A DNA stretch of 63,014 nt, the filler included, from Choristocarpus tenellus KU-1152 (Eukaryota > Protista > Phaeophyceae), in NCBI GenBank assembly GCA_964200185.2. It is 9 parts of 9 records of this genome, joined end to end, with 100 filler letters (N's around TTAATTAATTAA, not from the genome) between each part and the next. Parts side by side here need not be neighbours in the genome. Positions count along the whole stretch, not along the records: positions 48,082 to 55,028 come from CAXNAD020006994.1; 8 more parts are not named here. The stretch is one strand, 5' to 3'. A program made the position numbers and the translations under genes. The notes beneath the pieces were generated by a model. The model searched no databases, had not been told where the DNA came from, and was given only the letters and a program-made list of their open reading frames with translations. Shown one piece after another: positions 9,201 to 56,121 of the stretch; the first letter of the stretch is position 1; each line of letters starts with the position of its first letter.

Positions 9201-10688
9201 GAAAATGTTTTGAGGTGGGAATACTTGTGCCCTTCGTGCTGTAGTTGATTATTTTTCATCCCGATGGATCTACAATATGTACTTAGCTTCCCTTTTTACA
9301 CGTTTTCCCCCCATAGTGTAGCTGTATGGGAATAAACATGCTCTATAGGTTTCTCAGTGGCTTTGTGGCATTGGCGGTAGTTGGAACTTCCACTGCAAGG
9401 CACTTGACTGTGCTGCATTATGTATTTGCTCCTCATCATGGTTTGTCCTCAAAGCATGCGTGGGAAAAGTGCTTTGTTGAGCAGGTTTTCGTTCATGGGT
9501 AAGGGGGTCATGGGCATGTGATTGAGTGAGACGATTTTGTCAGTATAGAATGAATCAAAATACTCTATGTTTGATGTAGTGTGTGTTGAGGGAAAGGCAT
9601 GTAGAATCAAGGGATCACTACAAACACTTCTTGGAAGCAATGCTCCATACAGGATTTACGCCTCTCCTACCAATGCTCTTGAGAGTGCATGGCAAAGACA
9701 GAAGAATTGCCACCAGTATCATTGTACAAGGAGGGCAGGTGGAAGATGGATATTGCAGGGATTGGCATGCATGCATCTTGAGGTGATTCATCACATCTAC
9801 TTGGAGTTACCCCTCCCAGGCAGACAGTATTTGTACTGAATTCAAACAAGTCAAGGACGATTTTCAAATTGTGTCCACTCCCATACGCCTGTTCACAGAT
9901 GTGTCGACAAAGTGGCATGGATGGGTTCTTTCCCAAGCCTATTAACCTCAGGACACTTACAGACATTGTAGCCACTTTTTGCAGAGGGATTGACGCGTGT
10001 GATGAGACAACTTTTTGTGCAAGCGGTCGTGACACCTCATCATGGTCAAGACAACCCTGCTGCAGAGTGCCCACTCATCAGGTGAGAAAACCTGTACTGC
10101 TGGTAGAAAATGCATACATTATACATTATGTATGTAACGAAAATGCATACATTATACATTATGTATGTAAAAAAAATGCATACATTGTACATTATGTACA
10201 TAACGAAAACGGGCCCTCTTGTTTTCTTGAGCATGCATCAGGAAAATGATTTAGTATCAGGTTATGAATTGAATACCTGTATTAATACCTGTATTTTTTT
10301 GTTACCTCAAGATGTGTATAGTTTGGAAACAAAGTGTATGCATTCCGAAGTATTTATTTTTTCACATGTTGAATATGGGACAAATTCTATTCTAGGTTGC
10401 TCACTGTAGTATGAAAACGTCTACAATAGACAGTGAGGGTTGATTGTATGTGTGCATCTTTGTATTGATCCCATTTTAAACAAACCTAAGTGTGGAGACC
10501 AGTGTTGTACTCGACGTGTTCTCTCTTTAAACCTTCAATGCGTTTTCCGTATGCGATGTTGCCTATTGAGCCAGGTGCCAGCACACAGCAAGTGCTTGTC
10601 ACCTGATGTAGAGTGTTACTGGGTGGTGCATTTGCCTCACAGAAGTACTTGCTCTTCCCGGCCACCAAAGACTGGTGACTTTTGTTAG
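278..10688 (+). CDS. Hybrid sensor histidine kinase (end of HisKA, HATPase_c, receiver), 5'-truncated. Exons 278-406, 1081-1179, 2560-2986, 3983-4137, 4498-4683, 8168-8240, 9020-9129, 9899-10081, 10575-10688
   Basis: GT..AG exons join in phase. Motifs: ELMSVTIEQAIDFSR; TDGEWIWQM|CVNLLTNAVKYT (N-box); VSDTGIGVP (G1); LFKPFSQ (F); GTGLGL (G2); receiver VLVVDD, LVLTDLQMPILDG, GMSA, FPKP. The exon 5 acceptor and the last exon are less certain. Confidence 0.9.
1652..1915 (+). mobile_element. MITE family 1 (Sola-like), copy 1, in a kinase intron
   Basis: TIRs GAGTGAAAGTATCTTAGAGGGTA ... TACCCTCTAAGATACTTTGGCTC; 3-bp TSD TGA/TGA. Confidence 0.92.
4884..5012. repeat. 16-bp tandem repeat (GATCACCTTGTGCTTT), ~8 copies
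   Basis: Direct tandem copies in an intron. Confidence 0.92.
6125..6480 (+). mobile_element. Probable solo LTR
   Basis: Starts TGTCGCA and ends TGTAACA (TG..CA, imperfect inverted ends). AATAAA lies just before the end. The flanks GGGAA/GGGAG resemble a 5-bp TSD with one mismatch. Confidence 0.5.
7087..7309. repeat. 13-bp minisatellite (CTCTAAAGGATCY), ~17 copies
   Basis: Direct tandem copies in an intron. Confidence 0.93.
7379..7425. repeat. 11-bp tandem repeat (GATCTTGATTT) x4
   Basis: Direct tandem copies. Confidence 0.88.
10108..10208. repeat. 33-bp tandem repeat x3 (AAAATGCATACATTATACATTATGTATGTAACG)
   Basis: Direct tandem copies in the last kinase intron. Confidence 0.88.
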
Positions 10689-46942: not shown

Positions 46943-48279
46943 GGCTCGTTGGGGGTGACTATATCTATATATGAATCTGGAGTAAAATGTACTCGGAGAT
47001 TAGCACCCTCCTTTTTTAGTCATCAAAGACAAGTCGCCGACTATGATCCCGGAATGTACAAAGATCACATAAAAAAGTTTAATGATACAAAATAACCTTC
47101 GGTTACAGAAAAGAGGCAGATTCTCTCCCCATTAAAAAGTAAAAAAAAGTCCATTCCAAGGTGTGAGAGTTTATGAAGTAAACTGAGTTTTGTGGGCGGG
47201 AGAATTCTGGTTGGCTGGGGGGGCACAGGACAAGAATGTGGGGATAGAAAAGAAAGAAAGAAGAAGAGAATGAATAGTTAAGGAACGAGATAGTTAATGA
47301 AATTGAGTGGTAGGCAGAAACAAAGGATAGCAGTCAGGAAAATAAGGGGTACGAGATAAGGAGGGGAGGATAAGGCAACCTCCGAGCAAGCTTCTCGCCG
47401 GAGTGGATCAAGACATAATCTGAACAATCTTTCCGAAAGCTGGAAGGGAGAAAGGTCCGAGGGAAGGGGCGGGGATGCTTGAGAAACGGATATGGGAATG
47501 GTAAGAGAAGGTCGACAAGGTAAGGGGGCTGATGAGTGAGACGATGAACAACAGTGTGGATAGGTGTAGGGTAGGTAGGGAATACGGGTAGTGAAGTAGG
47601 TAGAGTCAGATATAATACAAGGGGTATCGAAAAATAAATACATAGGAGAAGAAAAGTACGAAATATAGAACTCGACGTAATGGTGGGGTGAAACAAGGGA
47701 AAGGGTTGAGGGCCACGCTAGAGCAAAAAGACAAGAGGGTGACGAAACGTAGGAGTAGAGTGTGCCGGTTATGCCACAAACATGGTTAGCCCATGGAGAC
47801 CACGATAAAAAGGGGAAAGTTATGGTTCGGGGACGGAGTAGCGTACCTGCAGTAATCTCGTGGATTAAGTGCATTTTAGATATCGCTCGAACGATAGGGC
47901 TAGGACGGATGTTAGGTCTATATCGATCGGTGGGATTGCGTGGATTTGTTTTGTCCGCTGCTTGCATCGGTTAACCTAATCNNNNNNNNNNNNNNNNNNN
48001 NNNNNNNNNNNNNNNNNNNNNNNNNTTAATTAATTAANNNNNNNNNNNNNNNNNNNNNNNNNNNNNNNNNNNNNNNNNNNNTGGTGTAGACCCCCCCCCC
48101 CCTCCCAGATACTTTGTGTCTCATGAGTTTTTGAACCTCTTCTTGAGTGATCGTACCTTGTCAGGTCCTACAATTAACAATTCAGGCATTCATATGCACG
48201 GACCAACTGTTGAGCAGCACATAGGGAGTGGGGGGTGTTTGCTGCCACTCTGACCAGGTGTGGTCCTAAGTATTCTCAC

Positions 48280-50825
48280 CGCATTGGCATACATATGCAC
48301 TACATAAGCAAAGCTTGAGACAGACTTGGCCGCCGCCTGTAGCACTTTGCTGGCATTGGGAAGCAACTCTGGCACGGACTTAAGTACCCCCCTGTCATGA
48401 AAAATGTAAACAGAGGACTGGCTATGAATTGGGAGCAATTATTTGTGTACTTTTTTTGTGCTTGTTAATTTTGCAGTGGTTTTGCAGTACAGCAACTGAA
48501 GTCACTTGGCAGCGTCTTAGTCCAATGTATCTAGTGCAAAACTGTTTCATGTGCTTGAAGTATCTCTCACCTCAAATTACGTGCACCCGGCAGCCATAAT
48601 ATTCATCTTCAGAGTGAAAGTATTTAATAGGCTATGAGTTTTGACCTGTTTGTCCGTTTGGGGCTTGGCTTCCCACGTGTTTTTTTATGACATTTTCCTA
48701 CTCCGAAATGTTTCAGAGTAAGTGACTTGTATACGTTATGAAAAGGTGTGCGTGGAACAAAGATATTGACACATCCTAACAAACACAATAGCCAAAATTA
48801 CATCAAAATCACAACGTTGGGTTTTGGTCCCCGAATGGAGACGGCGCTACCCTCTACTAAGATGCTTTCGCTCTGACCTTGCGCTACATAACTATGGTGT
48901 TGTGGCTCTGGGGTGTGCCAGAGGTTCGAGAAGAGAAAGAAGAACAAAAATTATTGAGTTTTGGCACAGCTACTGCTACCGATTAGAGTCAAAGTATCTT
49001 AGAGGGTAGAGCCGTGTCCGTTTAAGGACCGAAATCCAATGTTGCGATTTTGATGTAATTTTGGCTATCGTGTTTGTTAGGAAGTGTCAATATCCTTGTT
49101 CTGGATGCACCTTTTCATAGTGTATATATTTTACCTACTCTGAAACGTTTCGGAGTAGGAAAGTGTCAAAAACCCCCGAGGGAAGTCAAGCCCCAAACGG
49201 ATAAACAGGGTAAAACTCGTACCCTCTAAGATACTTTCGCTCATAGCAATGCGTTACCTCTACAATCGAGTAGAATGAATCCAGAGAGAGGGGAGAGACA
49301 CTCCTAGCGAGTTGAGTGAGTTCATTTCTAGGGTTTAACCTTAGTGCTGTTATGTTGCTTTCGATGTGTATATATCAACATTTGAATTATTGTTTTTATC
49401 TAGAAGGAGGGTATGAAGTGGGGGGTGAAAGCGTGTTCCAAGGAATGGCTAAGTTATTTGAGGTTACTGTTGTGAGGTTATTGTTTCTACCTGTTAAAAA
49501 TATTGTCAGCAAGGTCGTCATCAAATGCCCCCCTTTCGTTTGTCCAGAAGGCATTGAGGTCCATGAAACTGTTATCCATAGCTCCTAACTCAGCCCGCAC
49601 GAGAGTTCGTTCAAAATATACGGAAAGAGCTTCTCCTGAATCCTCCCCAAAGGGTTGCATGAGAGACAAAATATGATATAAAGAGTAGGTGAAGAGGATT
49701 TACGATGCTATCCCAAATGCAAAGAGAATGGTCCGACTGGCCGTGTTTCTAATGAGTATCTTTGAAGGAACATAACAAATGAAAGATATGAACATGCAAT
49801 CTTGCTTTTTGTGAATGTGTGACTTATAGACCTTCACAAAATGGGAATGAATGTGATGTCGTACTTCCTTTCTACTCGAGCAGAAGCCAGCTACAGCAAC
49901 GAAGCAACACAAGGTACAATTGTAACGGTTCTCAAATTTCTTAGTGTACATCTTCTACTTACCAGGGTTGGCGTCTCCATCACTTAGACTGTTAACTGCT
50001 GGCTTGCCCAAGGCGAATATCCGGGAGTAGTAACGACCCAGATCCCACAGGTCATCTACTCTAGAAAAGGAGACCGTTTCAAATGCCCCGTTTAAGCTCA
50101 GCTCCACTGTAAGAGCTGGGACTTTCCCTCCATGCTCGGTTGGGAGCGTGGGGCTCAAGCTGGAGTGGAACCATGACTGGAGGGTACTTTCTTGCTCTGA
50201 CTCCGAAGGGGGAAGAGTTATATGCTCTCCTTGACCACTTTTTTGTTCGGTCGCGTACGTCGCCACCTTGTTTAATCATTAATACCGATGTGAAATCATT
50301 GAGCGATCAGAGGAAGTTTTATCTGGACGTAGTCCTGCTTCAAGCGAGTACGACCCCTCTTAGATTTACCTCAATCCCTCAAGTAAAAATTCTTGGCATA
50401 TGAGGCTAAGGAAGAAATTGTGACTCGGGATTAGCTAGGCTGAGTGAAAGGATAAATATGTCACAGACCTGGTGATAGCCAGGGCGAACGAGATTTATCT
50501 CAACACCCAGAACCATTGCGTCGGGTTTGCCGCAGTATATCCAATCCCCAGAAAATTGGAAGCAGTATACGCAACGTTCTTCGCCTAGCTCGTCTCCCTT
50601 TGCTCCTCCTGCTTCCTTGTCCAAGCTCTCAAAATTTATTTTACCCCACTGCTCACCGTCCTCTACCACTTCTGACCGACGTTCCAGCTTCAGCAGCAGA
50701 TTCCTACCTACAGTGGTCCCGTTAGCTGGATGTGTGAGAACAACACGATGTTCATGGCAGCTGGCGGAAGCAAGATATACCAACCAGTGCAACATGACCA
50801 GACACTCGAAAATATGGCGTCCCAT
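48280..50825 (-). CDS. Putative secreted protein of unknown function, 3'-truncated; exons 50825-50469, 50266-49963, 49635-49491, 48391-48280
   Basis: Signal-peptide-like MGRHIFECLVMLHWLVYLASASC, followed by VVLTHPANG; four exons join in phase. Confidence 0.7.
48612..48873 (+). mobile_element. MITE family 1, copy 9 (intronic, more diverged)
   Basis: Recognisable TIRs; flanks TCA/TGA. Confidence 0.88.
48986..49242 (-). mobile_element. MITE family 1, copy 10 (intronic)
   Basis: Full TIRs; flanks TTA/ATA. Confidence 0.9.
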
Positions 50826-51037
50826 TACTGCTACCTTTGGTTTATTTGGTATCGAGACAATCCTATAATCCTATAATCCTATAATGATATCTTATGGATA
50901 TGGAATATTCTTTGATCTTGTCTAAACAAATGCCTCCGCAGAGGTAAAACCCGTTTCAAACAAGAAACAACGCTTGTCAGTCAATACAACAAAAATAGCA
51001 GTACTACTGATTGACAGCAGAGGGCATTTTTTGGAGT

Positions 51038-52258
51038 ATGAGAATCCCAACGCTCTATCGCTATGTCTACCATGATCTCTCCAGGATCATGGCACGATCC
51101 TCAGAGCCCTTTCTACGGACCCAGGGCAGGTGCTTTCCTTTCTCCACAAATTCTACGGAATGGAAGGACCAAGGCGACTTGACGTTTGTGTTGTCCCAAG
51201 TGGCCGATGGAAAGCTAGACCCATCATCTGCAGCCGCTCAATTGGAGCCCCTTCTTGTTTCTGGCGGTGCTGGAGCTGAAGGTGTGGGAAATTTTGCAAG
51301 AATTGACCACGATCGGAACCGACGAACAGGATTTCCAGAGGTCGTGTTTGGAGAAGGCAAGAGCACAGAACAACTCATTCGCATCCTGGAATCTATGATA
51401 CGAAACAGAGAACAAGATTGGAGCGAAGAAGGTGGCGTTAATGCGGCATCCCGATATCGTCCGCCTCCTATTGTGGCGACAAGGGTGTCACCAGATAAAT
51501 GGTCTGGTATTAGCAAGTGTTTGTCAGGTCTGTTGTACCATCCAGAAGCTCGCATCGTGGTGTACGAGGGAAAACGTGAAGGCGTTACAAGGACGGGTCG
51601 AAAGCTACCAAACGTCGAGAGTATTGGAAAGATTGCTGTCCTTAGCGCAGGAACTTCAGACCTGGATGTGGCTGAAGAGGCAGCTTTGCTTGCTGAGGTG
51701 GCAGGAGCAGAGGTAAGGGTAGCATTAAGTTCTACAGTACACACAGCACATGTTTTCCTCAACCGGAGGTGATTCAACATCATCTTCTCGTTTCATCCCC
51801 TTTAGTTGTCCTTGCACCAAATGCTGGTACCCCTACCCAACTCTACTCCCTCCACACCGTCTAAGCAAACGTACAATCCCTCCATATATATGTGTATGTA
51901 TTATCCTGATGGGCACTTTGGAAAATGGTGAATACAGGTGTTGAGATTCCATGATGTTGGGGTTGCCGGTTTGCATCGACTACTCCGCATCATTCCTGAG
52001 GTCAAGAAGGTAGGGGTTGTGGTGTGTGTTGCGGGCATGGATGGGGCATTGCCTGGGGTGGTAGCAGGGCTTGTTCGTTGCCCAGTAGTAGCGGTACCAA
52101 CCAGTGTTGGGTACGGGGCAGCAATGGGAGGGATAGGCCCTCTGTTGACCATGCTGAATGCATGTGCTCCAGGAGTGGCTGTAGTTAACATTGACAATGG
52201 GTTTGGGGCTGCAGCATTTGCTGTCAAGACACTCAATGGGGCAGGGGTGGGGGACTAA
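51038..52258 (+). CDS. larB: LarB, pyridinium-3,5-biscarboxylic acid mononucleotide synthase (nickel-pincer cofactor biosynthesis; CpmA-like); exons 51038-51712 and 51938-52258, ~331 aa
   Basis: Motifs [98 protein letters not shown]. One phase-0 GT..AG intron. Confidence 0.95.
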
Positions 52259-53269
52259 GCAGTTCACTGAAGGACTTTAGTGTGCAATTCAGGGTAAGGG
52301 TCAGGGGTGAATTTTTTTTACTACAGGTGGCGATAGATGCACTTGGATTCCGCAATGCCAAGGCAGTTGCCTTATTGTATTGCATTTGCTCTAGGTAGTA
52401 GGTAATTTACTGGCACAGCTAATGATCAATAACTGTTACTTGTTTTTACGGAAGGAATTACAGAATTAGGTAGGCGTGTGCTCATAGCTTTGCAACTTCT
52501 CAAATTGGATAAGAAGTGCATGACATGGAAGCTGAGGGCAAGGTGCATCTGGAAATAGTTGTGAAGTCTTGAATTTCAATGTGTATTATCTGATGGTGAA
52601 CGATTTTCGAGGGAGCCAGTCTATACCTCAATATTGAAGTGCTGCTTAAATGCTCATACCGCACTAATTGTGAACAAGCATGCAGTGCTTCAAAAATGGA
52701 GTTCATAAGCATGCCTGGCTCTAACATGATACCTATGCATCCTAACCCAAGTATAGAAGAGTGTATGAGTGTTTTAGCAACCACTCCAACGCTGGGTTAT
52801 TGACAGTTGACAGTTTCTTGGTGCTTTGAGATTTTCGAAGATTGCCTGATGTGGTAGGTTCCCAGCTACGAGATATGGAATAATTATTTTCTTTTTTGCA
52901 TGTTTGTCTGGTAGTGGAGGAGTGAGGAGCTGTAGGTCATTCTTACAAACTTAGAAGTACTGTGTACAGTATTCTATAGTTTGAAGTATAACATAGCCTT
53001 GAGCAGTGACCATCACGAAGTTTGAAATACAAACCCAGCTCTAGGAACTAGAGCAAGGTATTAAAAGGAGAACAAGGAGTGTGACTGAACTGCTACTGCT
53101 TGTTACTCACATAACCTCTCTTCAACTTTTTGTTCATCTCACCCTGAATGGTGTGTATGCTGTTGTAAATTGAGCTCTTGTGAGTGCTGGTACAACCATA
53201 TATCATGACATGATAGTTTCATGTGCAATTTAATATACTTTGAAGTAGTTCGTAGGACAAACAGTGATA

Positions 53270-53471
53270 GGCTCAAAAGTATCTGAGGGGGGTGACGGCT
53301 GTCCCTTCAAGACCATTTTTCCATGTTGCGACACTTGGGTGAAATGGTTGCATGCATCAGATAGATAATGTAAGTTCACTTCTCTTGATCAGGGCCTGAA
53401 TGGGCACCCTGGTGTAGCCGAATGGACACCCTGGTGTAGCACCCCCCCCCCCCCCCCAGATACTTTGAGCC
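53270..53471 (+). mobile_element. MITE family 2 (poly-C tract), full copy; partial termini also at 20583-20605, 43546-43585, 48082-48120, 55129-55146
   Basis: TIRs GGCTCAAAAGTATCTGAGGGGGG ... CCCCCCAGATACTTTGAGCC; flanks ATA/ACA. Confidence 0.85.
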
Positions 53472-53479
53472 ACAGTGTA

Positions 53480-54670
53480 TCATATTGTACATGTTATATT
53501 GAGTCAGATCAGATAGGAGCGTGTCACATGACTCTGCATAACAATATTTGACTGAAGGACTGTCCCATGAACAATGAACAACATTCCACAAGGCCTTATT
53601 CAAAATGGTATTTTATGAGGCCTGTGTGCAGTTTATTCCATACCCTTTCCTATTCCTCCCGGGCTTCCCATGACATTTTCTTGAGCTTGATGTCTTCATG
53701 CCACCCTCTTGGAAGCACCCTCAGTAAAGGGGTTGGGAGGACTTCTGAGGCAGGTTCCAAGTAGGCTGTGTATGAAGATGCCATGTTGTTGGCATTGGCA
53801 ATCATACCAGTCATATCTTTGGTTGGCACACCCTCATCTCCAGTACGAATTTTCCAGCAGCCATACTCACCAGTTCAGACCTCAAGGGGGGACTAGACCT
53901 CAGGGCTCTTCTTGGTTGAGAAAAAGACATATCTTGCCACTGAAGTACATCTTTCAACTGGGAACAAAACAGTCAAGGAGAAGGGCCAATGCTGATATGA
54001 TAAGGTGATCCAACTCCGTTTGGCAAAGCGGAGTGCACCCTCTTGTTGTCTACAAGGCATTGGTCAACCTGCCATTTGAGGAGTTAATCAAAACTAAGAT
54101 ATTCCGTTCACCTCAATGGCCCAAGTATGTGTGAGATCCTTTCCATTTGGGCACACACACAAATGTGTTGGCAAGTGAAGGTCTGTCCATTCCTGCAAAC
54201 ATCTATAGGCACTCACCGTTGCTGTTCAACATAAACTGCCCATAGTATGCCCAAAGAATCCTGGTGTCATGATCCTGCCCTCCCTTTACTCTCATTCCGA
54301 TGCAAGTATTCACGTCCATCAGAATATAGAACTTAATTGTCCTTGGAGGGTCTGCTGCACCATGGCGCGAAACTTCTCCCAAAAAGCATCCTTGGTTGTC
54401 TCTAAGCCCTCTTCATTTGAGGCATATCCCACAACAAGCTTACACTTGGCCTGCCTGAGGTCAACAACCTGAACTTCATCATTTGCTCATTGAGATATTC
54501 TACTTCAAGTGCGGCCTGTTGTAGGATTGAAGATTGAAGAATATAGTAAACACATGAGCTGTTTAATATTTGACTGGGGCAGATAGTCGCGCAGCTTTCT
54601 GCCCCATTGGAACAGTGGTATCTCATTGTTCGACATCAAACGCACAAATGGAGTGCCAGGTTGTTCTTTT
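53480..54670 (-). mobile_element. Decayed RTE-like LINE, APE endonuclease region
   Basis: The minus strand gives EVEYLNEQMMKFRL, LVVGYASNE..KDAFW, MDVNTCIG, LNSNGECL*MFA..LANTF..PK and ELDHLII, with stops and frameshifts. Confidence 0.7.
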
Positions 54671-54679
54671 TTGGGTGGA

Positions 54680-54940
54680 GAGCCAAAGTATCTTAGAGGG
54701 TAGAGCCGCGTCCATTTGGGGGCCAAAATCCAATGTTGCGATTTGGATGTATTTTTGGCTATCGTGTTTGTAAGGAAGTGTCAATATCCATTTTCCGGAC
54801 ACACTTTTTCACAACTTGCACATTTTACCCTAACCCTAAACATTTAGGAGTAGCAAAACGTCCTAAAAAAACCCATGGGAAGCCAAGCCCCAAATGGACA
54901 AACAGGGCAAAATTCGTGCCCTCTTACGGTACTTTCACTC
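54680..54940 (-). mobile_element. MITE family 1, copy 11
   Basis: Full TIRs; no TSD visible (TGGA/TTTG). Confidence 0.88.
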
Positions 54941-56121
54941 TTTGTTTTTCATTTCAAACAGGTTCCCCCCCCCCCCACCTTCGCTCTCAAAATGTTCCAG
55001 TCTTCTCCTAAACAGCAGCCCCCAATTTNNNNNNNNNNNNNNNNNNNNNNNNNNNNNNNNNNNNNNNNNNNNTTAATTAATTAANNNNNNNNNNNNNNNN
55101 NNNNNNNNNNNNNNNNNNNNNNNNNNNNCCCCAGATACTTAGGGTCTGCTACAAGAATAGATTCTGAATTCGGGTGCTTTTGATTGTGGGGTGGTTTGTG
55201 AGCTGGAGGTAATGTGTAATGGACTGGAGGTATGAAGGTGTAACTCCTGTATCCCCGTTAGGGTGGTTGATGTCAGTGGTGTATGTTGACCCTTGTAACA
55301 TGATACATGATCCAGCATTTTAAAATGTGCAGCTTGTTTGAAAGGAGTATACGTACTGTACTATTTTTGTTTTTCAAGAGTGTGCGAAACCTCATGCTCT
55401 ACTGTTTTTATTTATTATTGCTGCTGATACTGGGTTCTTTATTTTTTTCTAGTTTTTATTCAAATACTCTTTTTTTAAAATTGTTGGCTGTTTGTATTTA
55501 CCCGTAAGAGGGGTCCCTTCATGGCACGTGAAGAGTCAAATTCTCCTGTGTTTTTTTTTTTTTTCCATCATCGCAAGATATACAAAAAAAGAAAAAAGTA
55601 GTGTAATTTAAATCTTCCTTTTTCCTTTAAATAGAAAAAATAATGTATATATATATATATATATATATATTTGCACACTCTTCCTTTAGCTTCGGGCATT
55701 TTCTTTTTGTACATTCTTTTTATTCCTTCTTCTCAAGTCATACATCATTATTATTATTATTTTTTTATTGCGTGTCTTTTTTTTGTATTGTCTTTTTTGA
55801 GGTACCGCCTTCCCTACCCCTTCCACCCCCCCCTCCCACCCGCACCAGGCATTTGTATCCCTTGCCTTGTTGATGATCAGAGTGCTCCCTATGCTTGCTC
55901 TCACACATTTAACAGGCAGACAGACAGACACTCTTTGGATCAACTGGCCTGCTTAAAAAAAAAAAGTTTGCTCATATAATATTGATATCGTGTGTTCTTT
56001 TTTTTGTCACTAAATTGTAAACCTCTTTTTTTTATAGTATCATAAAAAACATACACTTTTTATCCACCTGCCTGCTCTCTCTCTCTCTCTCTCTCTCTTT
56101 TTCTTATTGTTGAAGAACAAG

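Follow-up and report, generated by a model that had tools for sequence, protein, structure and literature searches.

LarB carboxylates nicotinic acid adenine dinucleotide (NaAD) at C5 of the pyridinium ring and hydrolyzes off AMP, giving pyridinium-3,5-biscarboxylic acid mononucleotide. The only known role of the enzyme is as the first step of nickel-pincer nucleotide synthesis, ahead of LarE and LarC (PMC13510736). Nickel-pincer biochemistry is established in bacteria, and the eukaryotic literature that we found amounts to the occurrence of cofactor genes and LarA homologues in "some unicellular eukaryotes" and to one characterized oomycete LarA homologue, the D-gluconate 2-epimerase LarAH15 of Phytophthora nicotianae; all eukaryotic LarA homologues fall within the gluconate 2-epimerase branch (PMC11770544). 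The LarB, LarE, and LarC proteins of Synechocystis produce the cofactor in E. coli, and most cyanobacteria have these three proteins without LarA, which implies an unknown cofactor-using enzyme (PMC11796402). In 2026, one user other than LarA was described, the aldo-keto reductase NphT (PMC13524815). Here, we describe a larB gene of the brown alga Choristocarpus tenellus (order Discosporangiales; assembly GCA_964200185.2). It is the single gene publicly annotated (51089-52258) on a complete contig of 6,947 base pairs, which occupies positions 48082-55028 of the window, the whole stretch of 63,014 nucleotides (nt) that was analyzed and along which all coordinates are counted. We consider it highly probable that this is a transcribed nuclear orthologue of LarB that came from the plastid endosymbiont and that possibly bears an organellar presequence.

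Coding exon 1, taken from the annotated start (51089-51712, plus strand), codes for an N-terminal extension, followed by the N-terminal domain specific to LarB and by the beginning of the PurE-like domain (AIRC), the remainder of which is encoded by exon 2 (51938-52258, plus strand, including the TAA stop codon at 52256-52258). The exons were searched separately, and whole-protein tests were made on the public record P0001 ("unnamed protein product," Choristocarpus tenellus, 314 amino acids), which is the best database match and is 100% identical to exon 1. On the NCBIfam LarB equivalog (NF033503, cutoff of 175 bits), P0001 scores 243.6 bits, above the cutoff, and exon 1 by itself scores 72.8 bits and exon 2 by itself 151.2 bits; on the PurE family (TIGR01162, cutoff of 149.6 bits), P0001 reaches 31.7 bits, below the cutoff. 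The proteins of Discosporangium, Ectocarpus, and Phaeothamnion behave in the same way, with orthologues scoring 229.7 to 236 bits on the LarB equivalog. With PurE (N5-CAIR mutase or AIR carboxylase), the Choristocarpus protein shares a fold family, and exon 2 matches Pfam AIRC (AIR carboxylase) at 44.4 bits, but the LarB N-terminal region and the catalytic cysteine set it apart. On these comparisons of sequence, the protein is a LarB and not a PurE, and the family assignment is secure.

The comparison with L. plantarum LarB (PDB 7mj0 and 8soq) shows the same two-part architecture, a LarB-specific N-terminal region followed by a PurE-like domain, in collinear order over residues 7-240. Exon 1 aligns with residues 7-143 of 7mj0 (E value of 4e-18) and exon 2 with residues 148-240 (E value of 5e-30), and the two matches join across the splice site. 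The cysteine of LNACAPG (exon-2 residue 76, codon 52163-52165 on the plus strand) corresponds, through an alignment that is ungapped around it, to chain residue 221 of 7mj0 and is invariant in 12 aligned sequences. Cys221 is reportedly the nucleophile that forms the cysteinyl-pyridine intermediate in LarB. The equivalents of Ser127 and Asp128 are present in the motif AGTSD (Ser-Asp at 51656-51661, plus strand), of which Thr and Asp are invariant across the aligned relatives and the Ser position is either Ser or Ala; 8soq differs from 7mj0 solely by Ala at Ser127. The DNGFGAA and VPTSVGYG blocks are also kept. Relative to L. plantarum LarB, the Choristocarpus protein adds the N-terminal extension of about 29 residues and inserts about 18 residues in the N-terminal half and about 11 residues before AGTSD; it has Asp in place of Glu180, and its gene differs in being nuclear, interrupted by an intron, and without an adjoining larC or larE.

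The reading frame is open from an ATG at 51038, with an in-frame TGA just 5' of it at 51008-51010, up to the boundary GCAGAG/GTAAGG at 51712/51713, and it picks up after ATACAG at 51938. Three sequencing runs from one study cover this stretch, of which X1 and X2 are DNA-like and X3 is RNA-like. Runs X1 and X2 span it entirely, intron retained, and run X3 yields a single contig of 1,738 nt on 51096-51710 and 51936-53058 that skips 225 nt with GT..AG ends and continues unbroken through a 3' untranslated region of about 800 nt (52259-53058, plus strand). Because this contig skips the intron, the intron is real and removed and the gene is expressed: larB is transcribed, and its phase-0 spliceosomal intron (51713-51937, plus strand, GT..AG) is spliced out. 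The same phase-0 boundaries, GCAGAG/GT...AG/GTG, enclose introns of 225 nt in Choristocarpus, 371 nt in Discosporangium, and 1,311 nt in Ectocarpus, and many prokaryote-style open reading frame (ORF) calls terminate in GAEVR..., a read-through into this common intron. The G+C content is about 39 to 55% along the contig, with no abrupt change around larB. The earlier note on this DNA had described a complete two-exon LarB gene with exons and intron at these positions, and it is borne out by the collinear matches of both exons and by the RNA-derived contig, which skips exactly the proposed intron. Its call of LarB and not PurE agrees with the family scores, and its claim that the gene is nuclear and not bacterial contamination is strengthened by a spliceosomal intron, spliced out of the RNA and placed identically in three brown-algal genera.

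The gene is conserved across brown algae. The 40 best database matches are brown-algal proteins or fragments (Discosporangium, Ectocarpus, Laminaria, Hapterophycus, and many unnamed transcriptome products), after which Phaeothamnion and then cyanobacteria follow. Against Discosporangium, the nonsynonymous divergence (dN) is 0.10 for exon 2 and 0.31 for exon 1, and synonymous sites are saturated, so that dN only is given; as dN is low while synonymous sites are saturated, these values indicate that LarB is under strong purifying selection in brown algae. The sequence itself is ordinary and can already be found in public databases, where it bears generic names such as "NCAIR mutase (PurE)-related." What is new here is a LarB member from a multicellular lineage, within a known family.

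When the protein is placed among its relatives, its nearest prokaryotic counterparts, in searches and tree alike, are cyanobacterial LarB or CpmA proteins such as Synechocystis LarB, at 45 to 50% identity. In a scan of 185,579 prokaryotic genomes, the best matches were cyanobacterial, at 45 to 47% identity, with Bacillota and Thermodesulfobacteriota close behind. Green-lineage LarBs were obtained from a second protein search seeded with P0066, an unidentified eukaryote-like match, and comprise those of Cymbomonas tetramitiformis and Chlorokybus and three models named SM000..., which we take to be Spirogloea muscicola; they are 341 to 374 amino acids long with long N-terminal extensions. A maximum-likelihood tree of 61 sequences (supports given as ultrafast bootstrap [UFBoot]/SH-aLRT) recovers an ochrophyte clade (100/99) and a green-algal clade (100/95), which are united together with one unknown long branch (81/85). 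The crown cyanobacteria (100/99) are sister to this algal group, and the other prokaryotes are split from the algal and cyanobacterial side at 96/82. Because brown- and green-algal LarBs group beside the cyanobacteria, it is most likely that LarB arrived with the plastid endosymbiont and then moved to the nucleus.

Both kinds of relatives offer useful comparisons. Cyanobacterial and algal larB genes are alike in not being clustered with larC or larE, whereas the algal proteins differ in carrying extensions and low-complexity inserts. Green-algal LarBs resemble the Choristocarpus protein in being eukaryotic, in their long N-terminal extensions, in the Asp at the Glu180 position, and in their place beside the cyanobacteria, but they form their own clade, at about 50% identity, and have longer extensions of 80 to 100 residues. 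The oomycete system of P. nicotianae likewise belongs to a stramenopile and indicates that a nickel-pincer enzyme can function there (PMC11770544). No oomycete-labeled LarB was found among the 120 best matches, nor did any rank above the cyanobacteria, and a separate origin of the oomycete system is therefore possible. In both trees, a long-branched LarB of unknown origin (P0096, 279 amino acids, from a 905-nt Joint Genome Institute metagenome contig) falls with the algal clades and not with the crown cyanobacteria.

Several observations weigh against a LarB orthologue of endosymbiont origin that performs the first step of nickel-pincer nucleotide synthesis. The node joining algae and cyanobacteria, on which this origin depends, is moderately supported, at 80/60, and a long-branched archaeal sequence adjoins it. 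Glu180 of L. plantarum LarB, in the AGMEGA block, is replaced by Asp in Choristocarpus and in all algal LarBs aligned; the conserved block around this position in prokaryotic LarBs permits Asp or Glu. No larC, larE, or larA lies beside larB on the Choristocarpus contig, within 10 kb on either side in Ectocarpus, or in Discosporangium. The RNA contig begins at 51096, 7 nt past the annotated start at 51089, and does not define the 5' end of the larB mRNA.

Bacterial LarBs reach the conserved domain start, GDL...VA.G, after 5 to 8 residues and the Choristocarpus protein after about 29 (51089-51175, plus strand), or 46 from the first ATG, and this extension, a candidate targeting peptide that is present in all brown-algal orthologues, is without a counterpart in cyanobacterial or other bacterial LarBs. 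An extension of about 40 residues with an R-C-F motif had been described in the earlier note; the quoted peptide is present in the sequence and the motif lies at 51128-51136, but the length that is supported is about 29 residues, and the first 17 residues are unsupported. These 17 codons (51038-51088, plus strand) form a possible 5' coding extension that lies outside the public model and upstream of both its start ATG at 51089 (A at -3, G at +4) and the 5' end of the RNA contig; they show no similarity to the Discosporangium N terminus. The annotation and the RNA are not independent arguments against ATG 51038, as the annotation probably drew on the same RNA.

Across brown algae, the extensions are 13 to 80 residues long, basic, and rich in Ser and Thr, and nearly all have, 6 to 13 residues ahead of the domain, an Arg or Arg-Arg, a hydrophobic residue, and a run of Ser/Thr. 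This motif reads Arg-Ser-Leu-Ser-Ser-Thr in Ectocarpus, Arg-Thr-Asn-Leu-Phe-Ser-Thr-Ser in Discosporangium, Arg-Ser-Arg-Phe-Ser-Thr-Ser in an unnamed orthologue, and Arg-Cys-Phe-Pro-Phe-Ser-Thr in Choristocarpus, where Pro follows Arg-Cys-Phe. The remainder of the extension diverges freely (dN of 0.65 over 28 aligned codons). In its 29-residue form, the Choristocarpus extension has three Arg, one Lys, three acidic residues (Glu6, Glu23, and Asp27), and seven Ser/Thr, and its net charge is +1, against +3 in the 46-residue form; acidic residues number three to four across both forms. Net charges are +5 in Discosporangium and +7 to +8 in the longer three-exon Ectocarpus models. The helical moment of the Choristocarpus extension is 0.65 to 0.68, an uncalibrated value. 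An upstream coding exon, bounded by good splice sites (L001 9621-9704, also 9947-10000), is missing from the old 332-residue Ectocarpus siliculosus model; with it, the presequence reaches about 67 residues, the situation found in the more recent Ectocarpus sp. models P0022 and P0026. Green-lineage LarBs (P0066 and P0121-P0128, including an unidentified AT-rich transcriptome) have extensions of 80 to 100 residues, several of which contain Arg-Arg-Ser-x-Phe/Ile-Ser motifs resembling those of brown algae.

It is conceivable that the short, basic, Ser/Thr-rich extension directs LarB to an organelle, and it may be an organellar, most simply a mitochondrial, presequence. The mitochondrial processing peptidase follows the R-2/R-3 cleavage rule. 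The layout seen in the brown-algal orthologues, with Arg 2 to 4 residues ahead of the hydrophobic residue and the Ser/Thr run, fits this rule, and sites resembling those of a processing peptidase can be recognized in Ectocarpus (Arg-Ser-Leu/Ser-Ser) and in others (Arg-Ser-Ile/Ser-Ser or Arg-Phe/Ser-Thr). The first 42 positions of the Discosporangium extension hold seven Arg and no acidic residue, and the Choristocarpus extension, in either form, has no hydrophobic core of the kind found in a signal peptide (maximum 10-residue Kyte-Doolittle mean of 0.36), which argues against the heterokont plastid route. The mitochondrial presequence proposed in the earlier note is partly supported: the composition and the Arg-x-Phe/Leu-Ser-Thr motif do resemble organellar presequences, but the supported extension is short, only weakly basic, and interrupted by three acidic residues and by the Pro after Arg-Cys-Phe. 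The ancestry of LarB is, moreover, cyanobacterial, so that, a priori, a role in the plastid is no less natural to expect than one in the mitochondrion, and the similar Arg-Arg-Ser motifs of the green-algal extensions look equally like parts of chloroplast transit peptides. That LarB belongs to an organellar nickel-pincer pathway and acts in the mitochondrial matrix is accordingly a reading that we offer tentatively and regard as somewhat doubtful.

The extension could, alternatively, be the unstructured tail of a cytosolic enzyme, with no role in targeting. Such a tail would suit the shortness and weak charge of the Choristocarpus extension, and several database models begin only 13 to 22 residues ahead of the domain. 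The substrate would be at hand, as the cytosolic and nuclear Preiss-Handler route makes NaAD in most eukaryotes. The pattern of conservation speaks differently, however, since an Arg-x-hydrophobic-Ser-Ser/Thr motif that is kept across orders while the rest diverges is what would be seen in a processed presequence, and we view the cytosolic tail as possible but on the unlikely side.

A plastid protein is suggested by the grouping of LarB, together with green algae, as sister to cyanobacteria, and it could be speculated that the Choristocarpus model lacks an upstream exon encoding the endoplasmic reticulum signal peptide of a heterokont bipartite presequence. Ectocarpus does have the extra upstream coding exon at L001 9621-9704, with a proper GT donor and AG acceptor; the product of Ectocarpus sp. 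4 opens with a moderately hydrophobic stretch (maximum of 2.28), and in Choristocarpus a plausible acceptor, tctctccag/g, occurs at 51084/51085, which is 11 nt ahead of the point where the RNA contig begins. The RNA contig shows no extra 5' sequence, however, and run X3 has zero depth over 49300-51069. Nor does 48082-51200 hold a homologue of the Ectocarpus upstream exon, as a relaxed tblastn search of this interval with orthologue N termini returned noise only, besides the known match from 51116 onward. The hydrophobic stretch is also not conserved: that of Ectocarpus sp. 12 has an Arg within it and a maximum of 1.18, Discosporangium reaches 1.56, no Phe follows a predicted signal-peptide cleavage site, and the maximum of 0.36 in the Choristocarpus extension, as encoded by the present gene model, falls short of a heterokont bipartite plastid presequence. 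On balance, we judge a plastid location reached by this route improbable. That the gene is a bacterial contaminant, or a purine-biosynthetic PurE gene mistaken for LarB, can be dismissed as extremely improbable, for the Pfam match to the generic AIR carboxylase family only and the PurE-related name of the Ectocarpus orthologue are outweighed by the intron, removed in RNA and common to three genera, and by a PurE score far under its cutoff beside a LarB score above its own.

With regard to function, the two-exon nuclear gene would encode a LarB that performs the first step of nickel-pincer nucleotide synthesis, and an organellar nickel-pincer pathway in Choristocarpus is a reasonable hypothesis. 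In its most interesting form, the hypothesis does not concern mitochondria in particular and holds that algae kept the LarA-less pathway of cyanobacteria. A conserved and expressed brown-algal LarB, its green-algal relatives, and their affinity to cyanobacteria suggest that the cofactor is made in algae too. It may be speculated further that the complete cyanobacterium-derived pathway survives in the nuclei of brown algae and of prasinophyte and streptophyte green algae, where it would serve an organellar enzyme other than LarA, in keeping with most cyanobacteria; this broader proposal is a bold one, and we think it rather less than likely to hold. If true, it would mean that photosynthetic eukaryotes, a multicellular lineage among them, have a conserved need for nickel that has been overlooked, and algal nickel-pincer genes would add a nickel demand beyond urease. 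Our literature search returned no paper linking nickel-pincer enzymes to algae, and nickel goes unmentioned in the Phaeoexplorer genome paper; the Phaeoexplorer data include HECTAR output for these brown-algal proteomes (bioRxiv 10.1101/2024.02.19.579948). Since LarB, LarC, and LarE occur without LarA in most cyanobacteria, algal genes could, through co-occurrence, help to identify the enzyme that uses the cofactor in phototrophs.

The gene neighborhoods of prokaryotic LarBs were also surveyed. No LarC or LarE was found beside cyanobacterial LarB at L003, L004, L006, L007, or the crown-cyanobacterial loci. At L080 ("Cyanobacteria bacterium UBA8530"), LarC does adjoin LarB, but this LarB falls among those of other prokaryotes. 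In Mesobacillus stamsii, LarE and LarC1 were both recognized. In a metagenome-assembled genome of Brocadiaceae (L066, 6900-8864), LarB sits in an open frame of 655 codons. The approximately 370 residues encoded ahead of LarB have no match to a LarE or LarC1 seed; the frame may represent a fusion or be no more than an open frame.

Elsewhere on the Choristocarpus contig, five other ORFs were scanned against Pfam with no matches. Two ORFs on the minus strand, at 49955-50266 (103 amino acids) and 50406-50825 (139 amino acids), lie upstream of larB, and the second opens with a signal-peptide-like stretch; both are without a Pfam match, run X3 RNA depth, or annotation, and they are probably not genes. 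A short tandem repeat, CCTATAAT, is present in three and a bit copies at 50862-50886, some 150 nt ahead of the first ATG. A repeat of about 250 nt is interspersed along the contig in three copies that are 81 to 85% alike, at 48612-48856 (minus strand), 48985-49242 (plus strand), and 54679-54926 (plus strand), the first two forming an inverted pair with 143 nt between them. Short ORFs across these copies have a common peptide (for example, ...FGVGKC.K..R.KPSPK.TN...), and the repeat is probably a small non-autonomous mobile element. Finally, a poly-C run followed by CAGATACTTTG is found both at the very start of the contig (48090-48123) and downstream of larB (53441-53474). At these sites, all three runs (X1 to X3) show thousands-fold depth and many loose ends, which points to an element of high copy number or low complexity; it is probably what interrupted the assembly at the contig edge.

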